Translations under genes and position numbers: made by a program
The notes under the pieces: model-generated
What the model saw: the letters and a program-made list of their open reading frames with translations, nothing else
The model's database searches: none
Told to the model about the DNA's origin: nothing
Assembly: GCA_024704765.1 (NCBI GenBank)
Contig: JAKMXF010000030.1
Span: 1 to 64,000 of the forward strand
Source of the DNA: Oopsacas minuta
Taxonomy: Eukaryota; Animalia; Porifera
Direction of reading: 5' to 3'
Length of the DNA: 64,000 bases
Shown: positions 1 to 59,110 of the stretch, in pieces
How the letters are laid out: every line of letters begins with the position of its first letter
How positions within the stretch are numbered: the first letter of the stretch is position 1

Positions 1-1055
1 CCCCCGGTTCACCCTTTTCAGCTAGAATCCAATCAAACGCCATCCGCCTACATTCATCTACTTGAAATAACCTTTAAGTCCTCCTCTATGGTTCAGTTCA
101 TAACTAATCAAGTCAACACTCCGATCAGCTAGTCAACTAGCACAGAAATCCACACAGCCGTCCCCTTGGTTCACCCTTTTCAGCTAGAATCCAATCAAAC
201 GCCATTCCAGCCGTCCGCACTAGTACCTACTTTCAAACACACTCTCCTGGTCCCGCCGTTCAAGTAATAACTAGTCCAGGCAAAACGCCACTTGCCCTGA
301 AGGCCTTCACTGGTATCCATTTGAATGATTTGGTTACAGCATCCATCAGGGCCTTCACTACTAGAACATCAGTAAACACTGGCCATCGTTGTTGTTGTTC
401 ATTTTTCTATAACACTAGGAAAAACACTCCATAACTCATCTTTGAAACAAAAAAATCAATCCTTCACTGCTACCCATTTAGTCTCTCGGCATGAATACTC
501 TCATCCACTCACACCCCTCAGATTCTTCTACAATCACATCAAAATCGTTCACTCCTATCCATAAAGTCTACTCAAATGCACTGCTTCCCAGTTCAAGCGA
601 TACTATCATCAGTCCATGAGATTGAGTAAGCTTCCTGTCCAGGCTCGCTCGTCCATATAGTGACTTACAGCTTTATCTGTCAGCTTAAAGGGAACGTCAA
701 CTGTATTCCACCTTGATCTTCAGACATTACCATCTAGTATTACAACAACAGCTACTATTGACAATAGAAGAATTGATATTCTTTCTTGATCAAACTTGCA
801 AAGCCATCAGCTAACCACAGTGACAATTCGTCAATTTGCAATGGAGATTTCTCAGCTATGATCCAATCAAATACCACAAGCAGTTATCCAAATAGTGTCT
901 TAGCAATCCTCATATCTTCCGCTATTCCAATCTTGGAAGCTAAAATAACATATTTGAAAGCATTCTAATAATTGGCAATGGTTTTAGGATGGAGTACGGA
1001 TAGGCTATGCTAATAATAAAGCAATAATTCTTATAACATTTCATAGAATACATTC

Positions 1056-1826
1056 TTATTTACAGATTAAATATCCGTTAGCTCTGTCTATTTCTTCCAT
1101 TACTTTTGAATAACTTTCTCTGTTTCGAATATCAAAACTTTTAAATGAAACTAAACTGAAGTTTTGTATTAGATCTGTCAGACGTTTGTTGAGGGCTCCG
1201 TACTTCTCAGTGAGCGGATGGTCATGTAGGGTGTCTAGTAGATATGATAGGTCCAATACCTCTGTGTACATGTCCTGTCTCATGGTGTTAGCATTATCAA
1301 ACAGGTCCATTTTGGATAGGATATTAACATGGGGGAGCTCCAGCTGTAACATGGTGCATAAACTAATCATAGTCCCGCTTATGAACTTGGCGGGATCGTT
1401 ACAGAATTGGCAGTCCATCAGTTGAACAGCTGTCAGTTTCAGGCCGTTATCTACCAGTAATTTACAAATATTCCTAATTGAATTATGATGTGTGAATAAT
1501 TCTATCTGTCCAGGACAGTCTATTATGTAATAGCAATTCTTCTTCTCTTTGATCTTTCCTAGCAGCCAATCAAAATTAGCCTCGAGGAATTCAATGCAGT
1601 AAATATAGCTACCATTTGGTCCGATACCTAGCTCTCTCATGACGTCATCATGGGTGACAAGCTCACTAATACTGATCCTGCTCTCATAGGGAGTGCGTTC
1701 ATTGGCTGGATCTAGATTAATCACTTCTACTTGTCTCCCTCTCTCCGACAGATACTCAGACATAAATTTACAAAATGTACTCTTTCCGCTTCCAGGCAAT
1801 CCGACTACTATTTCTCCGTAACTCAT
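1056..1826 (-). CDS. GPN2: GPN-loop GTPase 2 (single exon)
   Basis: P-loop GLPGSGKST, GPN loop IGPNG followed by YCIEFLEANFDWL, DCPGQIELFTHH and NILSKMD, matching the recalled GPN2 pattern. Intact 256-aa ORF. Confidence 0.9.
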   Translation of the reverse strand: MSYGEIVVGLPGSGKSTFCKFMSEYLSERGRQVEVINLDPANERTPYESRISISELVTHDDVMRELGIGPNGSYIYCIEFLEANFDWLLGKIKEKKNCYYIIDCPGQIELFTHHNSIRNICKLLVDNGLKLTAVQLMDCQFCNDPAKFISGTMISLCTMLQLELPHVNILSKMDLFDNANTMRQDMYTEVLDLSYLLDTLHDHPLTEKYGALNKRLTDLIQNFSLVSFKSFDIRNRESYSKVMEEIDRANGYLICK

Positions 1827-1958
1827 AACTCTAATAATGGAATAATTAGTGTGAATAATTGTAACCTGAACTAATATTGATTTAATCTCTCACACTTATA
1901 CATACAATAACAATCTAACAAGCTACTATTTATAATTCAGAGCTATACATTCGTGAGC

Positions 1959-2670
1959 TCATTGATCCTTTTTGGGTTCCTCCATGGCAGATTGTGCCTC
2001 TTTGCTCGCGTTATTCAAGAGGTCACCCGCCAGCTTGCTGGTGTCAATTGCCTCTCCCTTAGACACGGATTGCATTGTAGATGAGACTGTCTGGGAGATT
2101 ACATTGCCTGCCCTTGAGGTTACGTCACTAACAACCTCCTGCATCGCATCTTTTCCTTTATCCAGAACTTTATCAATCTCACTCGAATACTTAGTGACGT
2201 AGGGGAATATTATGTTCCTACAAACATTTGATATAAATAGATTTGTGACTAATAATAGAACAAATAACTTACTTGTAAATAATAGAAGAGCCGTTGTTTG
2301 GGATTGGAGCCATGCACCAAATCAGGAATCCGCACTTTAGCAAATAATAGAAAGGAATCCAACTCAGGAAAATGTCAGCGAAGAATTCTGCTAATCCAAA
2401 GAATCCATACACAACCCAGTAGGTTAGCCACTGAGTGTCGTCTGCGGTGTCCTCAGATTCGATAGCAAACACGCTCCTGTAAGCGGGGTACACAAACCCG
2501 ATAAGCATGGCTAAGAGACTGGCGCCTGGTCCAAACAGGAGGTATACAGCTAGAACCGCAGCTGTTATGAGGAACAAGTAGAACTTAGGGACCTTGCTGT
2601 GTGTCTCCGCTAGAGTGAAGATTTTCCCAACAGGGGTGTCAGGTTCTAAGAGTTTGTTAATCTTCTCCAT
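1959..2670 (-). CDS. REEP5: REEP5/6-like TB2/DP1/HVA22 ER-shaping protein, 2 exons (2670-2273, 2217-1959)
   Basis: GFVYPAYRSVFAIES..DDTQWLTYWVVYG..WIPFYYLLKCGFLIWCMAP is the TB2/DP1 signature. A 55-bp GT-AG intron joins in frame to KNIIFPYVTKYSSEIDKVLDKGKDAMQE. Confidence 0.88.
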
Positions 2671-3389
2671 AACTAATACGTCTATAATAATGCAATGTAT
2701 AGCTATTACAAGTATATATCTGCCTAATAAAGAAATGTATAGCTATAATATAATTAGTGTATACATCTGCCTATTAGTGCTGGATATAATGTGTATTGAT
2801 TCTGTGGTAGCAGGACTAATTTAATTATAGAAATAAGAAACTTAATTAGTTCACATTAAACGGGTTCAACGCATCAACCAATCAAAATCATCGAATTACT
2901 CACTCTCTAAGTATTCACAAAATCTGAATGAATTCCATATGCATAATTAAATACATTCTTTTCGTCATGATCGTTGTTATGATAAACTCAGCAGATTAAT
3001 TAATACAAATAAGGGAAAATATTAATTGTTTGAATTAAAAGAATTATTGCATTTGAATACTAAAAAGAAATAAAATTTGGATTATTCTTAATCTGATAAT
3101 TAAATTATAGAATAGCTTAGGGACATAATCAGCTGATAATTCATGACGTATGCAGAGTACCTACAGACAAATAATTTCATAGAAGTATACTTAATTAGGT
3201 AACCATGGTTTAGACCTGGATACAACATTAGCCATAAGATATGCTCGTTATTCAATGAATTAGTCAGATTAAAGCTATGACGTAATCCATATTATACTGT
3301 TACTAAATATAGCATCATCATATATTATACTATTGTATATGTGCGATATAAGTACATTAATAGACCAAATAAACATGACTAAGTTCAGA

Positions 3390-4877
3390 CTAGCTATCTA
3401 GGAATTCTTGCTGGAACAAAAACAAATTGTTCGTCGCAGCGATCGCCAAAATGTTTTCGTCAGGGTGCCAGCTCGCGTGGAGAATCTTCCGATTAAAATC
3501 CAGACTTTCGAGAGGAATTTCGTTGGAACTGTCAAATTCCAAACCGTCCCTTCTGGGTTTCCGCGTCCCACCAACCGTTTTAGGTTGAAGAATGTGTCCT
3601 AGTTGTTGAGTATTCTTTGACGCTTCGTAGCAAACTTCTGCGCGAGACTGGAAATCATAAATTCTGAAAAAGTTGTGATAAGAACCAGTCATTATGCCTT
3701 TTGACGCGCCACCCCATCGACACTCAAACTTGTCAAATATGCAATCATTCTCGTAGAGGGAGCAAAGTCTAGACTTGAGGTGATCATGTACTGGGAAAGT
3801 GCATAAAGGGTGTGATTCCATGTTAACGTCCCATACCTTGATATTCAGGTAGTCTCTGGAGAGAATATACCTACCAGTACTGTTAAAGTGCATATCTGAA
3901 ATTGAAACTATTACCTCTGAGAAGAAGGACTTATTGGCAGGATCCTCTGTCTCTTGGAACCATTTGGCGTGCTGGTCGCAGAGGGCTCTAGACCTCATGT
4001 CACACAGTCTTATCGCCCCGGTGGAGCTGGAATAAATAAACTCGTGACAGTTATGCGGGTGGAATTGAGCAGAGGTGATTACTTCTGATAAGTCCTCCAT
4101 ATTAGCTGGCTTTATATCCACAACATTGAATGATTGGTCAGTACAGTTCAGGTTCCAAACATTAACACGTAGATCATCAGCTGATAGAAATGTTTCGTCA
4201 TCAGAATTAACTGAGATAGAGTTTATGTGATAAGTATGTGCATTAGAAAATATCCGCCGGGGAAGAGCTTCTACAGAAAAGTCCTTATCAACACAAGGAA
4301 CCTTCAAGAATTTAGAAAATGCACGCGTGTTCCCTTCGTCTGAGATTAGATTCAAATTTCTAGTCCGCGGCCTTCTTTCCGCGATTTTCCAGAGTTTGAT
4401 AGTTTTGTCATTTGTGGTTAGCAAGTAAAGCGAATTGTTCGGTTGACGAATCCATTTGATTTTATTTATTTTCTCTTCGATTTCCAAAGACTTCAGATAA
4501 TCAAATTCAGCTTCGTGAGATTGGAATGTACAGTACACATTATAGTCACAGAGGATCGGACTGTTCCTCTTCTGGTGTCGCTTGAATATAACCACACGGC
4601 CCCCCTTGTCCCCAGTGGCCAAGTACTCTCCGGTAGAATTGAACTCCACAACTGATATGATGTCTGCGTCTGTTATATCGTCATCCATGGTCCCTTTTAT
4701 TTGAGAAAATGTCCAAGGAATTTGTGTAGCGTCCTCGGAAGACGTGTATTGGTAACTGGGAGAATCGGATCGGATGGATATACCTCCGTCAGCTCCTTTG
4801 GATAGAGGTGGATCCAGATCCATTGGGTCAGGACCATCATCATTAGAACTCATGCTAGACTGACTATTCTTGCTCAT
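3390..4877 (-). CDS. PPP2R2: PP2A regulatory subunit B55 (WD40), single exon
   Basis: [66 protein letters not shown] and [11 protein letters not shown] are hallmark B55 motifs. Confidence 0.97.
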
Positions 4878-5683
4878 TGACTAGCTGTAGCAATAATTTA
4901 CATTAAAATTTCTTTGCTAACAAAATATTAAGGAAAACAAGGAAATTCAGAAATTCAATTCTTAGAACTGAAACCAATACTAATGAACAGCAGTCTTATC
5001 AAATATCGATAATATTAGGTGACAAATAGGTACAACGGGTCTAGCTCTCTCATTTAAGAGACAGGCTTATGTCCTGTAACATAATCACAGGAATTATGAG
5101 TTATGAGGTGAGTGAGAATAATTATATTATTCAGACATACTAATATTTCTATAAAAGTGGATAAAATAAATAATAATTATTGATCTCTCTAAACATTCAA
5201 TCGTTTGTAACCATGGCAACCTTATGAGCAGAGGTGTAGTTATAAATTCCTATTTGGGATTGCTGACAAATGTCCTGACAGTCTAACTAAGATCTCATCC
5301 GGGAATTTCTAGTTTTTGCAGGATCTCTCATGGGATTAGATTTTCTTGGACGGTAACAGATCTGTAAAAATTTTGGTCCTTTGTCGCTGCTGAACTGACA
5401 CATTTAAGTGTCCATTAAGCGATAAATAAACCCCAAAGTAAGGTGACAAAAATTATAAATAAAAGAATCTACCAAAGTTAATATAATTATTATCAAAACA
5501 GAAAATAATTCCGCTGTTTGGAATTTTGTAATTGCCACACACAAAACAATAACAACAACAAATAAAGTACAATAAGCAATGATAGGGAAATTAAAATAAG
5601 ATCAAATAAAATGGGAACTCCCATTGGAACTGAATTTTTACAAATCTAACAAACAAACAAACAAACAAATAATCTCTAATAAC

Positions 5684-51760: not shown

Positions 51761-52646
51761 TCAACAACAAGCAATATCTTTATTCGATTCAGTATTAGTA
51801 CCATTTAACTTTACAATATTTTGCATTCCTTCCTGCCTACCTCGTTGTCTAGCAAAGCTCTGAGTCAATCTATTACCCATTAGTCTCAACAGCTGATTGA
51901 ACCCTTCTTTCACACCCTGTCCTGTAATCGGATTTACTTTAAAACACGCTATATTCCTTGCTACATATTTGTCCAAACACTCACTGAACATTCTTTCATT
52001 CAACTGACTCTCCTCAAATCTGTTAGCAAATAGTACAACAGCTGGATACTCAATGTCCAAATAGTAATGTCTCAAGTCCTCCTCCCAGGTCAACAGGTTA
52101 TCGAGGCTCTTTCTGTTAGAACAGTTCCAAACCAAAATCACACCATCCTTCTTTCTAAACATAAATATGGAAATAATAGTTCCAAGCTGTGGCCAAATAC
52201 CTACCCCGTAACCATGGTTACCGAGCCCTTTAGAATTTTCCCAAGAATTCAAATTATATAAAATATCAAGAGTTTCCCCTTGGGGTAAGACGTGTAACCC
52301 CGGGGGTGAATTCTCCCTTTGAGTTTGTGAATGAACCCATCAGAGGCGCCGAACCCCCCCCCTCTTACCTATAATAACTAGAAGTTAATAATCCATTACT
52401 CTCCATTCCAGAGGTATCGCTTAGTTCCACATTCATCCACACCTGCTGACCATCAACAGGTAGAGGTGCACATTTAATGACACTATCCCGAAACTCAAAG
52501 GGGTTTTTGTCTGACAGGGCCAACTCATTTCCCTGCCATATCCTCTTAAGAATTGTTGTCTTACCACTTCCAAGATCTCCTAGTGCTGTCACCTGAACTA
52601 TATTAGATTCTATTTCTTTATTGTGCATTCCATTCGTACTTACCAT
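51761..52646 (-). CDS. Divergent Rab-like small GTPase, exons 52646-52369 and 52154-51761
   Basis: G1 GDLGSGKT, G3 DTSG, LTSSYYRKKDGVILVW and a C-terminal CC. G4 and G5 are degenerate (NRFE, VNPI). Confidence 0.75.
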
Positions 52647-52821
52647 TGCTAGGAACATATTTATTGGAATAGGGAATGATGGTGCTCTTAACACCTTCCC
52701 TGTTGCCCCTAGGGGGACACAGGACCCATGCGGTAAATAATAAACAAACAAATAACAATATGATCTATAATCTCTCAATAAACTATGCTAATTGGTTTAC
52801 TAAACAAATATATTCTATTTA

Positions 52822-55594
52822 CTAAATAACAGAACTCATAGCAGATATCTTTGAGTAATCACTGTAGAATACCTACACAATACAATTGTATTTGTTTACT
52901 AAATATTCATGTAAACAATGGCAGTATTGTTTCACTAGAGGAGTGTAACCTCCGTTTGCGGGCTGCCAGAGACGTTTATGGCTGCTACACTGCACATACC
53001 AATACGGTTGTTTGGTAACTAAGGATTACCTTGAATGCTCTTGTCATATGCAGTAGAGAACTAGTACAACACATCTCTCTTATGGAGTGCATGCTCAAAG
53101 ATGGTCCACCTACATCCACACCCTTGACACCCAGTTTAGCTGATATCAGGGGGCCTACCGTGGTACCACAGGGGGTGTCATTCCGCACCACGTAGGGTTG
53201 TAACGGTACCCCTGCTCTGGTGCATACGGTCTTGAAGATACTGGAAGTAGCACCTGATGTTGAGTACCTCTGATTATGATTAATCTTTAGAACTATTCCC
53301 TAGTGAATATATTGTTTGTTTGTTTGTTTGTTTGTTTATTTACTTGTTTATAAATTTGGACCCCGTTGTCCCCACTGAGGACAATAGTACCCAGTGAATA
53401 TATTTGCATTTATGAATCTATACCTTATGAAATTCAGGTCTATGTTTCACTTCATGTTTATCACTAGAGAATAAATAACACCTAAATGTGCCGATACTGT
53501 GGATACCGGTTTTAAGAACACCCTTTGTATGTTCTTATAACCGGTATAAATATACAGGAATTTATGAGAACCGTCTTCCAGAGGATGGTGCTTATAACCG
53601 GTATATCCTGTATAACAAAGAACATACCATAGGCACCTACCTGTAGTTAGGGTGTATAGCATGAGCTTGATCACTAGACAGTAAGAATGAATTAGCTAAT
53701 GCTAGTTCGTAATCAGCTGGGTTAGGATTGGTGTTGGGACATGTAACCCTCCTTATGAGAGCTTCTAACATATTTGATAGAGCTCCTTGATAACTACCAG
53801 ACCCACATTCCTCATTATCAAATAATGCTACTACCCTAACTATAGTATCTGTATGGAGAGATGATTCACTGGCTATTAGTCCCTAAATATAAACAGATAT
53901 AAGGGTTTGTTTGTTTGTTTATGTGTTTACTAGTTTGTTCATAAGGCCTACCATCGAGGTAACGAGAGTACATATTAACCGATCACAGGTGCTGAGTTAC
54001 ACTTTAATGATGTCATAAATGCACAAGTGTCCGCCGGTATTTGTTTATCTGTTTATTGTTTACATAATCTAACCTTAACACCTGTGAAACAAGCCACCTG
54101 ATTATCCAACCTTCCTGCAAACACAAATTCCCTGTGTAATCCGCCTAAACTAGCTGGTTGTGTATCAGCCAATGAGATGTCGTAGTCCAGAATAGAATTA
54201 GGCGGGCAACCTGTCTCATTAGATAATAGGCTTAACAGGGGGTCTGTACCGGTACCTCCCAGCTGATTTTGTATCTCTTGTGTCGCCAATATTGGCAAAC
54301 TAACAAGAAATAATTTAGTCATATTCGTGAAAATATTAACAAAACAAAAAAACAAATTCCCCAATAAGGAACCCTCGATTCTGATTGGGCTAAACATTTA
54401 TCACCTTCCCTCAGAAAGGTGTGAATATTGAGGTTAGATCACACAGACACAAATTGCAAGTCTGTAACCAATTCCTCAATCGGAAAGTTGAAATTTTTGT
54501 GTATTTTAACTTTTCAAAAGTGGTTCCCAACATTTTCCACCCGTGGACCCCTTCAATGAATGAAATACAAATTTTGAGATCCTGTGGACTTCCCTGTAAC
54601 CCCAAGGGCCCCCAGGTGTGAAACCGCTACCATGCAAGAATTGTAACTAACGTATGCATTTCTTTATTTGGAGCAAATTTCTCTCTCTCCACAGAGTCCT
54701 GTAGATGAATACAGAGGGAGGAGATACGTAGAATTGGTCTCTGTACGTGTACAAGTTTATCTTTCAAATCACCATCATCTCCCTATCACAATTAATTCAA
54801 CTAACACCTTACTATTTGTTAAATAATTAAACAACACCTTGTATACAACTCTTCCTGCTATAGTCAAATCTCTGTCAAACCAAGAATGCCATATTCCACC
54901 ACCATAAGTACTAACACCTAAACAGCTGTAACCTAGCTTGCTCTGTTTACTATCCGGTTTAACCTATAATTAGCATTCCATTACATGCATGTAATCACTT
55001 GGTAACTTTCGAATCTGATAGGTCAGAAACATCTGTCACCTTTTCTCAGAAAGGTGTTACTATTTTCGAATACTTTTATAGTATGTTCATATAAATATCA
55101 CACCCCACACACACATACCAAATTTAAGCCCCCTGGGTCTTAACAGTTCCTCATAATAGTACCTTAAAGCAAGGACTATCCGTGTGTCCCGCTATAATAG
55201 CAAATCCATTACCAGATTTGTACTGTCCTCCTACACTGAATGCCACAAGGCTAGAGTTATTCCTTGCGAAGAAATACTACAGAAAATTATTGGTTAGAAT
55301 TAGGAATATGCTTATGTTTGTTGTTATTTACTTTTCCGTTAGGTTTTATATCCCAGGGATTCTTCTCTAACACCTCAGTATATCCAGCTGTTAGCAGCAT
55401 TCCACGACACTCTGCCACTACTAAAGATAAACAAACAAACAAACAAACAAACAAACAAACAAACAAACAACAAACAAACAAATAAACAAACCATGGAAAG
55501 GAGAAGGAGACGCATCGGAGAATGTCAGATATTCTTTAGCCAATGAATCTGCTTCATTTAGCTTTGACTTAATGTCAGCTGTCTGATTAGCCAT
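52822..55594 (-). CDS. DNPEP: Aspartyl aminopeptidase (M18), multi-exon
   Basis: [56 protein letters not shown] and [21 protein letters not shown]. Last exon [16 protein letters not shown]. Confidence 0.95.
53497..53610. mobile_element. pogo/Tc1-like MITE in a DNPEP intron
   Basis: TA-flanked. Termini C(T)GTGGATACCGGTT..AAGAAC and CTTATAACCGGTATATCCTG. Shares about 70 bp with the 43238 copy. Confidence 0.65.
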
Positions 55595-55724
55595 GTACTA
55601 TAAATAGAACTAAATATGCACATAAAAACTTTAATCAAATTCCTTCTATCACGCAAAAGTCGCAAATAAATGTAATCTCATAAAAATAAACAACAATAAA
55701 TATACAAATAAACAATTCGTAGTT

Positions 55725-57170
55725 CTAACAACAATTAGGTTCCTGACCATCCATCACTTGTTGCCTCTCACTTAACTCAAAACTTCCGTCACTTGGTCCC
55801 ATTTTATTTTTGCTGTCACACTTTTTGATATATCTCTCTGTAAGAATTCTACAGAATATCGCTTCTAGCTTATCGATACCTAAATATGGATACAATATTA
55901 AAAAGTACAGTAGAATATAGGTCAGGGGTTCCCAACCTGTGACCCATCGACCCCTTGGTGTCCCACAGACTATAGCAGGGGGCAAAAAATGTGTGCCGAC
56001 CTGCTAATTAGGGGTAAACAGGAACATATAATTCCATTCTGACACTTTCACATGTCTACAGGATTATTTAGTAGAATATTTTGCCTGAATAATCCAGTGT
56101 AATAAATACAATCAAATGGTGTCTGCACAGGCTGTAATTCGAAATTTGCTGTACTATATCAACGCACAACATTGGTGGCAAACATTTCCGTGTTCACTCT
56201 CCTGTTCACTCTCCTGTTCACACCTTTAGAGAATAAGACGGGTACAGTGGTGATGCCGGTTATAAGAACATCGTCAGGAATTGCATATAGATGTTCTTAT
56301 AACCGGTATGTTCTGTATGTGCACCATATCATCCTCTGGAAAACTGTTCTCATGTATTGCTACTCCCAAGGGTGTTATTATAACCGGTATCCCCCGTATA
56401 TATATACACACACTTACCCGTACCGTCCCGTGACGTCTTAACATTAGGATATTGTTTGTACTTCTCCTTACACAGATTATATTCATTATCATTCCATGAT
56501 TCATCACACTTATTAGCACATAACACTATTTGAGGAGGATCAGGATTCTGCGAATCTGTTGTGTTTGTTATGGAGATTAAGTTTTCGTTAATTTTCCTGT
56601 AAGATTCCATATCACTTAACGACCAGACCAACACGATTATGTCCCGGTTCCTAGTAATGAGATATAGGTAACACAACCATAATTACGAGGGTGAACTAAT
56701 CTACTGATTAGGTGTATGAATATTTGAGAGGAGGAGCAATAGGAGTGTCCACCGGTTAATCGGGTCACTTCTCCAGAAACAGAACTATACAAAGTGTTAA
56801 AATACTCTGCTTAATCTGGCCTGATGTGACCCGATTAAGGAGTCTACTTGAGATCCAGGAAACACAGTAAGTATACATTCCTAATACACGAAATGGTTGC
56901 TATGGAGCTAGAGAAATGTAGAGATTATACTTACCTGTATATTGAATTAGGGGAACCTCCCATTTCGAATTGTTGGTCACAAAGTCGTACCATAATGGTC
57001 TCCTTATTAGGAGGTACTCCTATACTCATCTTTCTTTCAATGAAATCAGATTTAATTGTGGGTCTCGATGCTCCATTGTCCACTTCAATGCCACTCATTT
57101 TCTGAATTAAAGAGGTTTTTCCTACCCTGCTGTTCCCGACAAATAAAATATGAGGAACATATGCTACCAT
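55725..57170 (-). CDS. Atypical Rab-like GTPase paralog A, exons 57170-56935, 56650-56418, 55879-55725
   Basis: G1 GNSRVGKT, switch I PTIKSDF, DQQF in place of DxxG, G4 NKCD and C-terminal NCC*. Splice phases are consistent. An alternative start is possible at 57194. Confidence 0.8.
56245..56396. mobile_element. pogo/Tc1-like MITE in intron 2 of Rab-like paralog A
   Basis: TA-CAGTGGTGATGCCGGTTATAAG ... TTATAACCGGTATCCCCCG-TA, with an internal perfect 17-bp inverted repeat CCGGTTATAAGAACATC/GATGTTCTTATAACCGG. Confidence 0.65.
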
Positions 57171-57518
57171 AGTTCTAGACATTCTATCGTACATACCATA
57201 ATCACATAATGGTTGTTATGAAGTTTATTGTAAGTATAACGATATAGGTTAAGGCTGTATGTTAAGGATGTGATTAATACGGACCTAACACATCACTTTG
57301 CGTCCTTCGTGGGTGCTGAATTGGCACACTAGGTGCGCGCCAAGTACCTATGTTAACCCCTAGTCTATATACTGGGAGAACCCTCAAATCTGATAGGTCG
57401 TTGAATATGAGAGCTGGTCATACAGGACAGTAAACAATAATAATAGTTATAAACATCACAAGCGAAAAATCACAAAATATATCACAATAAAATATCAAAA
57501 TAATTCCAAATAATAACA

Positions 57519-58723
57519 TCAACAACACCTAAAGTCTGGTCTAGGTATAGGGCCGATAGATACTGTGACTGAATCAGTTTGTCTCTCTTCAGAGATAATA
57601 TTGAACCTTACTGCTAGGATCTTACATAATTCAGACTCAAGGAGATTAATCCCTAAAAATAGAACTAATAAATAAGTTCATGGTACCGGTTCCCAAATTC
57701 CAGGGGTAGAGGGAGCCCTTTTGTGATCCAAGTATCTCTACAAGCACTAAACTATAAGGAACCAAATGAAACTAGTAGTATTTGGCAGCACTGTCCTTAG
57801 TCCAGTCTGATTAAGTGGAGTCTTACACATGACTTACCAGTTCCATCTCTAGCAGAAGTCTTAGCTACAAAATGGATTTTGTATTTCGCCTTACACAATT
57901 TATATTCATTATCATTTCTGGAGGCGTCACATTTATTAGCACATAACACTATATCAGGTCGGTGGTGTTTATGGCTGTCATATATATTGTAGATGGACTT
58001 TAGGTGCTCATCAATACTTCGAAAGGTTTGTGTGTCATCCATGGACCAGACCAATATTATTATGTCACTCTGTCTACAAGATGAAATAAAAGTAACTACA
58101 CTGTGCCCTCTCTAATTGTCCGATTTGACCCAATTGCCAGCTGGTGGACAATTAGAGAGGACCACTGTATAGAACATTTCGTAACTTTTATCAAAGGTTT
58201 AGATATACGTACAAGCAAGCTTCGTATTCTTGCACTGTGCAGTCAGCGAACACTACGTATGCGTGGATAAAGCAGGGATTATCTAGGTGCTAAAAGTATC
58301 AGTTCAGTAGCCATGAAGGACACAATGTGACGATCATGAGAGGGTGACATATTGACCCCTGTAATTGGTACAAGGGATCAATATGTTACCCTCCAAGACA
58401 GTCCCAACCGAAAAATCCCTGTATAAACCCTTGCCAGATCCACAAACACTATATTGTGTCAGTAGACAGTTGTTACAACTAGTATTCCACCTGAATATTG
58501 ATCGGGGGCTTGCAAACATATCAAACTGCTGATCATACAACCGAACATTAACATCCCTTCTATCCTGGCCTGAACCAATAATCAGTTGTTTATTCACATA
58601 ATCTGATTTGATTGTAGGCTTTGTGTTCTCTGTGTTTACATCATGACCGCTCAGTTTACCGATTAAGGTAGTCTTCCCTACTCCATTACAGCCGACGAAT
58701 TGTATGTAAGGAGTATAAGCCAT
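57519..58723 (-). CDS. Atypical Rab-like GTPase paralog B, exons 58723-58491, 58073-57838, 57652-57519
   Basis: G1 GCNGVGKT, PTIKSDY, DQQF, NKCD, G5 TSAR and C-terminal RCC*. Same intron positions and phases as paralog A. Confidence 0.8.
58099..58167. mobile_element. pogo/Tigger-like mini-MITE, 69 bp, in intron 1 of Rab-like paralog B
   Basis: TIRs CACTGTGCCCTCTCTAATTGTCC / GGACAATTAGAGAGGACCACTG with TA flanks. Confidence 0.7.
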
Positions 58724-58763
58724 GTGAATACTTTCTAGTTGCTATGGTAACGAAATTCCTGTA

Positions 58764-58835
58764 CAGTAGACTCTGCTTAATAGGGTCACATCGGGACCAT
58801 GAGACCATTTTGCCCCGTTTAAGCAGAGTCTACTG
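58764..58835. mobile_element. pogo/Tigger-like mini-MITE, 72 bp
   Basis: Perfect 17-bp TIR CAGTAGACTCTGCTTAA/TTAAGCAGAGTCTACTG with TA flanks. A related degenerate copy lies near 56744-56849. Confidence 0.85.
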
Positions 58836-59061
58836 TACACACACTTTCTTGAATATTAACATACGAAGTTACGTATTGTCTCTTGTACCAATTGCACCCA
58901 TAGGTTAGGGACTTAACACCTTTCAATAATTTCACCCCTGGGGGCGAGTCAGAGGTCAAATAACCAACATGGTCCTATCCTTATCATACCAAAGTTTCTT
59001 ATAAGAAATTCAGTCCGTAAGGGTTGAAGGGGATTGGAAAATTGCAAAGTATAAACAGTGC

Positions 59062-59110
59062 AAATAAACAACAATAAACAACAATAAACAACAATAAACA
59101 ACAATAAACA
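59062..59110. repeat. 10-bp tandem repeat (AATAAACAAC), about 5 copies, downstream of the aGPCR stop
   Basis: Direct reading of the sequence. Confidence 0.9.

Follow-up and report, generated by a model that had tools for sequence, protein, structure and literature searches.

The 64,000-nucleotide stretch of the Oopsacas minuta genome analyzed here (the window; contig JAKMXF010000030.1, positions 1 to 64,000 of the forward strand) carries on its minus strand a tandem pair of Rab-like small GTPase genes, gene A (positions 55725-57170) and gene B (57519-58723). Where GTPases have the DxxG sequence of the G3 motif, both genes encode Asp-Gln-Gln-Phe, in the context LCDQQFEM in gene A and LYDQQFDM in gene B. 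The gene models were built by hand from the sequence of positions 55400-59100 by translation of exon pieces, and coordinates refer to the window unless another contig is named. Each gene has three exons, with the stop codon TAG in gene A and TGA in gene B.

Translation of gene A starts at the ATG at 57170. Its exon 1 (56935..57170) encodes GNSRVGKT, PTIKSDF, DQQFEM, and SPNS and ends in a phase-2 donor; the codons of D65-Q66-Q67-F68, assigned to the G3 position from the sequence and alignment, lie at 56967..56978. Exon 2 (56418..56650) encodes DIIVLVWS, CANKCD, and KTS-RDGTG and has a phase-1 donor, and exon 3 (55725..55879) encodes a C-terminal helix and a tail that ends in GQEPNCC before the stop. 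In gene B, exon 1 (58491..58723, with the ATG at 58723) encodes the P-loop GCNGVGKT, switch I PTIKSDY, DQQFDM, and SPRS, and its phase-2 donor falls inside an Arg codon. The G3 codons, read from the sequence as D64-Q65-Q66-F67, lie at 58523..58534. Exon 2 (57838..58073) encodes DIIILVWS, the G4 motif CANKCD, and the G5 motif KTSARDGTG, and has a phase-1 donor; exon 3 (57519..57652), whose junction is the one used in the NCBI model, encodes a C-terminal helix and a hypervariable tail that ends in FRCC and the stop. All four introns have GT..AG ends. In both genes intron 1 is in phase 2, within an Arg codon following ‘..SI[YF]R’, and intron 2 is in phase 1, within a Gly codon following ‘DGT’. 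The first-pass annotation of this DNA had described a tandem pair with three exons each, common intron phases, and the motifs GxxxVGKT, PTIKSD[FY], DQQF[ED]M, NKCD, and a C-terminal CC in both copies, and this description proved exact in every element.

The hand-built model of gene B is identical to a protein already in the databases (NCBI/UniRef, ‘Ras-related protein Rab-9B [Oopsacas minuta]’; here, P0001), residues 1-78 of which correspond to exon 1. The name ‘Rab-9B’ rests on ~25% similarity. In contrast, a word search with full-length P0001 returned P0001 alone and no gene A protein of 110-350 amino acids, and gene A appears to be absent from the protein databases searched. The two encoded proteins are 48% identical in exon 1, 60% identical in exon 2, and about 50% identical overall, and genes A and B are the only two loci of their family in the Oopsacas genome (61-Mb assembly, 365 contigs searched).

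Four sequencing runs of one study cover the gene pair. Three of them have the flat depth of DNA, whereas the fourth (X4) has an RNA-like profile; the BioProject of the genome includes RNA-seq data (PRJNA761294; PMC10280926). In X4, the predicted exons have a depth of about 400-4900, compared with about 12-85 for intron 1 of either gene. Contigs of this run are joined at 55879|56418, 56650|56935, and 58073|58491, which are exactly intron 2 and intron 1 of gene A and intron 1 of gene B, and on the plus strand these joints show CT..AC ends. Three introns of the four in the models are thereby covered; for intron 2 of gene B there is a weak RNA hint, a loose end at 57837. Given the contrast in depth between exons and introns and the exact intron joints, both genes are transcribed and spliced as modeled.

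The same sequencing data reveal variation that is confined to gene B. Runs X2-X4 differ from the window at seven sites, all within exons 1 and 2 of gene B (57874, 57888, 57953, 58545, 58555, 58634, and 58635), and the allelic changes comprise N30R, D57N, V60A, A140E, H145Y, and one synonymous change. The introns, the intergenic DNA, and gene A have no differences in X2-X4, even though single contigs span them, and the chance that randomly placed differences would fall only in these exons is ~1e-6. The pattern could possibly be due to diversifying selection on alleles or to gene conversion. A retrocopy is an unlikely source, since the genome has only the two family loci.

To find relatives of the pair, we carried out an exhaustive search of 1.84 billion representative proteins (E ≤ 1e-3), which retrieved 258 matches. 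Only six of them have E values below 1e-10, and every one of the six is a short fragment of the same DxxF family; among full-length relatives, the best reach no more than 33% identity, with E values of about 1e-8. The family relatives are single-exon fragments produced by prokaryote-style gene calling on unannotated assemblies from the European Nucleotide Archive (ENA), five assemblies in all, and the contigs behind them carry complete three-exon genes with introns at the same positions as in genes A and B. There is one copy in L003 and one copy in L004 to L007, while L008 to L010 hold one DQPF copy and one DQQ copy. Five tandem copies are found in L011 (one DSQF, one DSPF, and three DSHF). 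In L012, two tandem copies follow downstream of a 7tm_2 gene, which shares 62.5% identity with the adhesion G protein-coupled receptor open reading frame (ORF) of the window, and we therefore regard synteny with L012 as conserved. Introns, metazoan-type neighboring genes, and this synteny indicate that the other assemblies are from other sponges. Judged from these sequences, the family is sponge-restricted, small, and tandemly duplicating. We found no published description of a DQQF or DxxF GTPase family in a literature search, and the family is apparently undescribed. Both the homolog search across taxa and the literature thus bear out the earlier proposal of an undescribed, lineage-specific family.

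Copy number in some of these contigs needs to be read with care. In L005, L008, L009, and L010 (ENA ERZ26869290), one GTPase gene pair is repeated as head-to-head and tail-to-tail palindromes, most likely a long-read assembly artifact rather than true copy number. Similarity among copies is also a mosaic: compared with L003, L004, L012, and L008, exon 1 of genes A and B resembles the ‘PTIKSDF’ type and exon 2 the ‘ASIGGDY’ type. The pattern points to earlier gene conversion among tandem copies or to duplications that occurred independently. Because of the per-exon mosaic, genes A and B cannot be matched one-to-one as orthologs with the two L012 types.

To evaluate which residues of these proteins are under constraint, we aligned exon 1 of 12 copies from five assemblies. 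Twelve residues are invariant (F9, G11, V15, G16, K17, L20, G50, D64, F67, S72, P73, and S75), and conservation within the exon is highest in two segments, the P-loop and G3/switch II, each of which contains five invariant columns. The D-x-x-F...S-P-x-S pattern formed by D64, F67, S72, P73, and S75 is present in all 12 copies, none of which has a Gln after F67. The P-loop motif GK[ST] is present throughout, and the switch-I Thr position is T or S in 11 of the 12. Exon 2 conserves DI[IV]V.VWSL, CANK[CS]D (12 of 12 copies), and the G5 SA, from which only L011c5 and gene A depart; in gene A, G5 is one residue shorter than in gene B (KTS-RDG at 56419-56430 versus KTSARDG). All 11 C termini recovered end in CC (NCC in A, RCC in B, and nine others), and in most the ending is P[ED]P[NSK]CC. 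By comparison, a pattern scan of the matches listed in the large search, query included, finds DxxG in 137 of 151, a count that includes a few family fragments in which a string such as DLAG happens to occur further downstream. The listed matches that lack DxxG are family members, exon-2 fragments without a P-loop, and five sporadic proteins. Since DxxF is invariant in the 12 copies whereas DxxG prevails among the listed matches, the DQQF sequence shared by genes A and B is more than a chance coincidence.

We estimated selection pressure by the Nei-Gojobori method, summed over exons 1 and 2. Between genes A and B, the proportions of nonsynonymous and synonymous differences (pN and pS) are 0.29 and 0.83, and, because synonymous sites are saturated in this comparison, the ratio of nonsynonymous to synonymous divergence (dN/dS, omega) was taken from orthologs. 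Omega is 0.27 for L003 versus L004, 0.18 for L003 versus L012c1, and 0.14 for L004 versus L012c1, and the comparison of L012c2 with L008P gives pN of 0.11 and pS of 0.78. Recent L011 paralogs range from 0.32 to 1.07. The fast evolution of the family, whose paralogs are ~50% identical, could be taken to mean that the copies are decaying or neutrally evolving duplicates without a function of their own, as could the one recent L011 pair with omega of about 1.07 and the mostly nonsynonymous allelic differences of gene B. However, frames are intact, splice sites and intron phases are conserved in all copies, spliced RNA is present, orthologous genes evolve at omega of 0.14-0.27, and switch II is invariant. 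We therefore consider decay extremely improbable and reject the pseudogene reading. The DxxF substitution is maintained under purifying selection, in agreement with the earlier argument that its retention in two diverged copies implies selection, and transcription and non-neutral evolution, both of which had been proposed as checks, are found here. The family is real, expressed, and selectively maintained.

What takes the place of G3 depends in detail on the alignment. In an ungapped alignment, Phe falls on the G3 Gly and [ED] on the catalytic Gln; in the HMMER alignment to Rab9A, the Gly is deleted and Phe falls on the Gln; and in the MAFFT alignment, AGQE is deleted and Phe falls on the RabF3 Phe. 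Under all three alignments, the family lacks both the G3 Gly and the catalytic Gln, whose position holds D, E, S, T, or A, and its switch II is two residues shorter. An AlphaFold2 model of P0001 (alignment of 96 rows) has a mean predicted local distance difference test score (pLDDT) of 90.2 and canonical small-GTPase topology with six strands and five helices. In this model, strand beta3 reaches residue 66, D64 occupies the place of Ras D57, F67 starts the switch-II loop, and the switch-II helix spans residues 73-77.

The residues just downstream of DQQF allow a different reading, in which the proteins are still-cycling GTPases: a G3 motif shifted four residues downstream, [DE]xxG, would sense the gamma-phosphate, a GTPase-activating protein (GAP) of the TBC type would provide the catalytic Gln and Arg in trans, and DQQF would be an insertion-like extension of beta3. 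Of the seven QQ/QP-type copies, six have such a [DE]xxG after DQ[QP]F, namely gene A (OmA), L003, L004, L012c1, L012c2, and L008P (as DMGG, DLAG, ELAG, EMGG, or EMRG), and conservation of the P-loop, the switch-I T/S, and NKxD is what a working switch would require. However, gene B has DMFA, without a Gly, and the five L011 copies carry S, T, or A at the acidic position and a Gly in only one. The acid and Gly further downstream vary, in contrast to the invariant D64 and F67; the AlphaFold2 model puts D64 at the end of beta3, like Ras D57; and the shift would leave a switch II of only ~7 residues. Because gene B and most L011 copies lack the downstream motif, we retain a shifted G3 only as a rival explanation and consider it rather unlikely.

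Apart from switch II, the proteins look like ordinary members of the Ras superfamily. Full-length P0001 matches the Pfam Ras domain (PF00071) with 47.6 bits against a cutoff of 21.6, whereas single exons give weak matches to Pfam Roc and Ras (exon 2 of gene B alone, Ras, E = 1.7e-5). The top Foldseek matches of the P0001 model are all Rab or Ras proteins (probability 1.00), between which this comparison does not separate, and an Atlas feature search yielded nothing beyond generic leads or atypical GTPases like IFT22 and NKIRAS. Among proteins of solved structure, the best sequence relative of P0001 is Rab9A (E = 1.3e-9), with K-Ras and H-Ras close behind (~5e-7). With a profile of family exon 1, 57 of the 60 listed matches to solved structures are Rab or Ypt proteins, mainly Rab6, Rab7, Rab11, and Rab21, and the remaining three are two of EhRabX3, a pseudoRab, and one of the GTPase Der, although the two profile alignments shown end at profile position 52, upstream of the G3 region. 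(A MAFFT alignment of P0001 with the exon fragments misplaced exon-3 pieces and SPxS tails and was not used as a profile.) By eye, RabF1 IGVDF is matched by IKSDF or IGGDY at three to four of five positions, and RabF2 to RabF5 are weakly recognizable or absent. By domain match and fold, genes A and B belong to the Ras superfamily, and by their solved sequence relatives they lie nearer to Rabs than to other small GTPases.

Placement in a Rab subfamily is another matter. The Rabifier criteria ask for at least 40% identity (PMC3192815), whereas full-length relatives of gene B are at most 33% identical, and the alignment with Rab9A is weak and gapped across switch II; we thus reject membership in the Rab9 subfamily. 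By these criteria, genes A and B would be ‘RabX,’ and the label ‘Rab-9B’ does not denote orthology and is misleading. Compared with the closest solved Rabs (Rab9A/B, Rab6, Rab7, and Rab11), the family shares the G-domain fold, the P-loop, switch I (TIxxDF versus RabF1 IGVDF), NKxD, and SA, as well as the CC double-prenylation motif after a hypervariable C-terminal tail. It differs in having no DTAGQE, with Gly changed to Phe and the Gln lost, in a switch II that is two residues shorter and contains the invariant SPxS, in unrecognizable RabF3 and RabF4, and in Y, F, or C in place of the RabF2 W.

Other GTPases have departed from the canonical G3 motif as well. RGK proteins are extended at length at both termini and lack CC prenylation, and we reject assignment of the sponge proteins to that family, since the C terminus differs and the motif is DQQF[ED], that is, DxxF and not DxWE. 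The DxWE sequence is the G3 of the RGK GTPases Rad, Gem/Kir, Rem1, and Rem2 (PMC4081519). There is no specific sequence similarity between the two families, and the loss of G3 in them is independent and convergent. The EhRabX proteins of Entamoeba are, like the sponge family, lineage-specific, Rab-derived, and non-canonical at G3. The pseudoRab EhRabX10, however, has DTQDME at G3, no G2 Thr, and altered G4 and G5 (PMC8514894), whereas the sponge family, from an unrelated lineage, keeps G1, G2, G4, and G5 and has changed only G3 and switch II.

The retained motifs bear on whether these proteins bind nucleotide at all. As nucleotide-free pseudoGTPase scaffolds of class I, like CENP-M or the pG domains of p190RhoGAP, they would use the G domain only as a protein-binding fold. 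The loss of the G3 Gly and catalytic Gln, the one-residue G5 deletion in gene A, and the degenerate G4 motifs of neighboring paralogs (NRFE, NKCE, and NKAE) would all be in keeping with this. Loss of the binding motifs would be expected, however, once nucleotide binding had ceased, whereas almost every one of the 12 copies retains GxxxVGK[ST], the Walker-B Asp, NK[CS]D, and SA despite saturated synonymous divergence. We consider nucleotide-free scaffolds improbable. Selection on GK[ST], the switch-I T/S, the Walker-B Asp, NKxD, and SA argues instead that a guanine nucleotide and Mg2+ would still be bound. With the G3 Gly and Gln lost and G1, G2, G4, and G5 kept, the proteins resemble, in sequence, the nucleotide-binding inactive class of pseudoGTPases.

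We propose that genes A and B probably represent a sponge-restricted, Rab-derived family of guanine-nucleotide-binding proteins with a rebuilt switch II, in which hydrolysis and switching are impaired. The C-terminal CC is predicted to receive double geranylgeranylation of the Rab type, which would anchor the proteins to membranes. Guanine nucleotide and Mg2+ would be held by the conserved GK[ST], switch-I T/S, Walker-B Asp, NK[CS]D, and SA. In switch II, the Gly that senses the gamma-phosphate would be replaced by the invariant Phe, with the catalytic Gln lost and the shortened segment ending in the invariant SPxS. The closest experimental analogy is the Ras G60A mutant, which binds GTP with drastically impaired intrinsic GTPase activity and adopts state 1, an effector-incompetent state (PMC4867591); a dominant-negative effect has also been ascribed to this mutant (Ford et al. 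2005, as cited in PMC4867591). Like the sponge family, G60A has the G3 Gly replaced; it is, however, an engineered single change in Ras, whereas the family has a bulky Phe fixed by selection together with a remodeled switch II. The invariant Phe, the loss of the Gln, and the behavior of G60A lead us to predict a nucleotide-loaded protein without canonical hydrolysis or switching: intrinsic GTPase activity would be very low, and the GTP form would lack the canonical active conformation of switch II. The earlier suggestion of pseudo-GTPases or locked switches is likewise a prediction from motif loss and the behavior of G60A. The proteins may thus act as membrane adaptors that are constitutively nucleotide-loaded or regulated in a non-canonical way. 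Strong conservation of DxxF...SPxS suggests that this surface has a function of its own, as a partner-binding or regulatory site.

Several points weigh against this proposal. The other assemblies are putative sponge DNA, as judged from introns, neighboring genes, and synteny, and the input alignment of the AlphaFold2 model held some misplaced fragment rows. The three aligners disagree on the placement of DQQF, and the downstream [DE]xxG is present in most QQ/QP-type copies, gene B and most L011 copies excepted. A backbone NH exists at any residue, so contact with the gamma-phosphate is still conceivable with Phe in place of Gly. Finally, TBC RabGAPs provide Arg and Gln in trans, and GAP-assisted hydrolysis could survive the loss of the Gln in cis.

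A more specific version of the proposal can be offered only tentatively. The proteins might be prenylated, nucleotide-loaded Rab derivatives of glass sponges in which the D-x-x-F...S-P-x-S module replaces Gly and Gln and in which activity is set by an input other than hydrolysis, for instance by proline-directed phosphorylation of the invariant Ser-Pro site of switch II, or they might trap exchange factors in the manner of G60A.

Genes A and B are also part of a larger local group. In a region of ~21 kb, contig C30 carries five divergent Rab-like genes: gene C, genes A and B, P0017, and a fifth gene. The first-pass annotation had placed three non-canonical Rabs within 7 kb; the cluster exists and gene C, its third member, is real, but the cluster is larger than described. 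Gene C (51761-52778, minus strand; ORF bounds rather than the exact coding sequence) has two exons, DTSGME, NRFE, and a C-terminal CC, and is 32-37% identical to P0017. Its guanine specificity is doubtful, as it has NRFE for NKxD and DTSGME without the catalytic Gln. The other two genes lie just past the window. P0017 (LOD99_10354; C30:69597-70664, L025:5597-6667) has DTAGME and NKCE, and its relatives, too, come only from sponge assemblies. The fifth gene (C30:71418-72286, L025:7418-8286), apparently similar to P0017, has DTIELE, in which the G3 Gly is changed to Glu, NKAE, and a C-terminal KCCN.

All five C30 genes share a phase-2 intron in the Arg codon of ‘..YYR’, and none has the catalytic Gln; most other small-GTPase loci of Oopsacas match as single open frames. 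Gene C, P0017, and the fifth gene further resemble genes A and B in the ‘..LVW/LTW’ of beta4, in their Gln-less G3 regions (DTxG-ME and DTIE-LE), and in ending in CC or CCN. They differ from genes A and B in having a degenerate G4 (NRFE, NKCE, and NKAE versus NKCD) and no second intron, and their identity to A and B is ~28-37%; gene C and P0017 also differ in keeping the G3 Gly (DTSG and DTAG). The shared intron, together with the absence of the Gln from all five, suggests two successive losses, first of the Gln in one local gene family and then of the Gly in its A/B branch.

Repeats are scattered around and within the gene pair. Short elements resembling miniature inverted-repeat transposable elements (MITEs) lie at 58762-58842, 56749-56850, and 56202-56435. 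The first, ~40 nucleotides upstream of the gene B ATG, has a perfect pair of 21-nucleotide terminal inverted repeats (TGTACAGTAGACTCTGCTTAA...); a piece related to it lies in intron 1 of gene A (56749-56850), and another repeat lies in intron 2 of gene A (56202-56435). Over these MITE-like elements, the DNA runs reach 5-20 times their baseline depth and contain many chimeric joints. On either side of the gene pair there are (CAAA)n/(TTTG)n microsatellites (55430-55490 and 59060-59100), which are also present within an intron of the L012 ortholog (L012:8122-8319).

Few residues of GTP-binding switches are as highly conserved as the G3 Gly, which is known to be replaced in only a small number of natural families (RGK and some pseudoGTPases). 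The family described here, with an invariant bulky Phe at this place and its other nucleotide-binding motifs kept under purifying selection, is a natural experiment on the requirements of a working switch II. Glass sponges are syncytial and have a compact genome that lacks several metazoan core genes (PMC10280926), and these proteins add to the evidence that they have membrane-traffic regulators of their own. If the interpretation is true, a prenylated Rab derivative with a D-x-x-F...S-P-x-S module would show that natural selection has produced an alternative to the way in which switch II canonically works.

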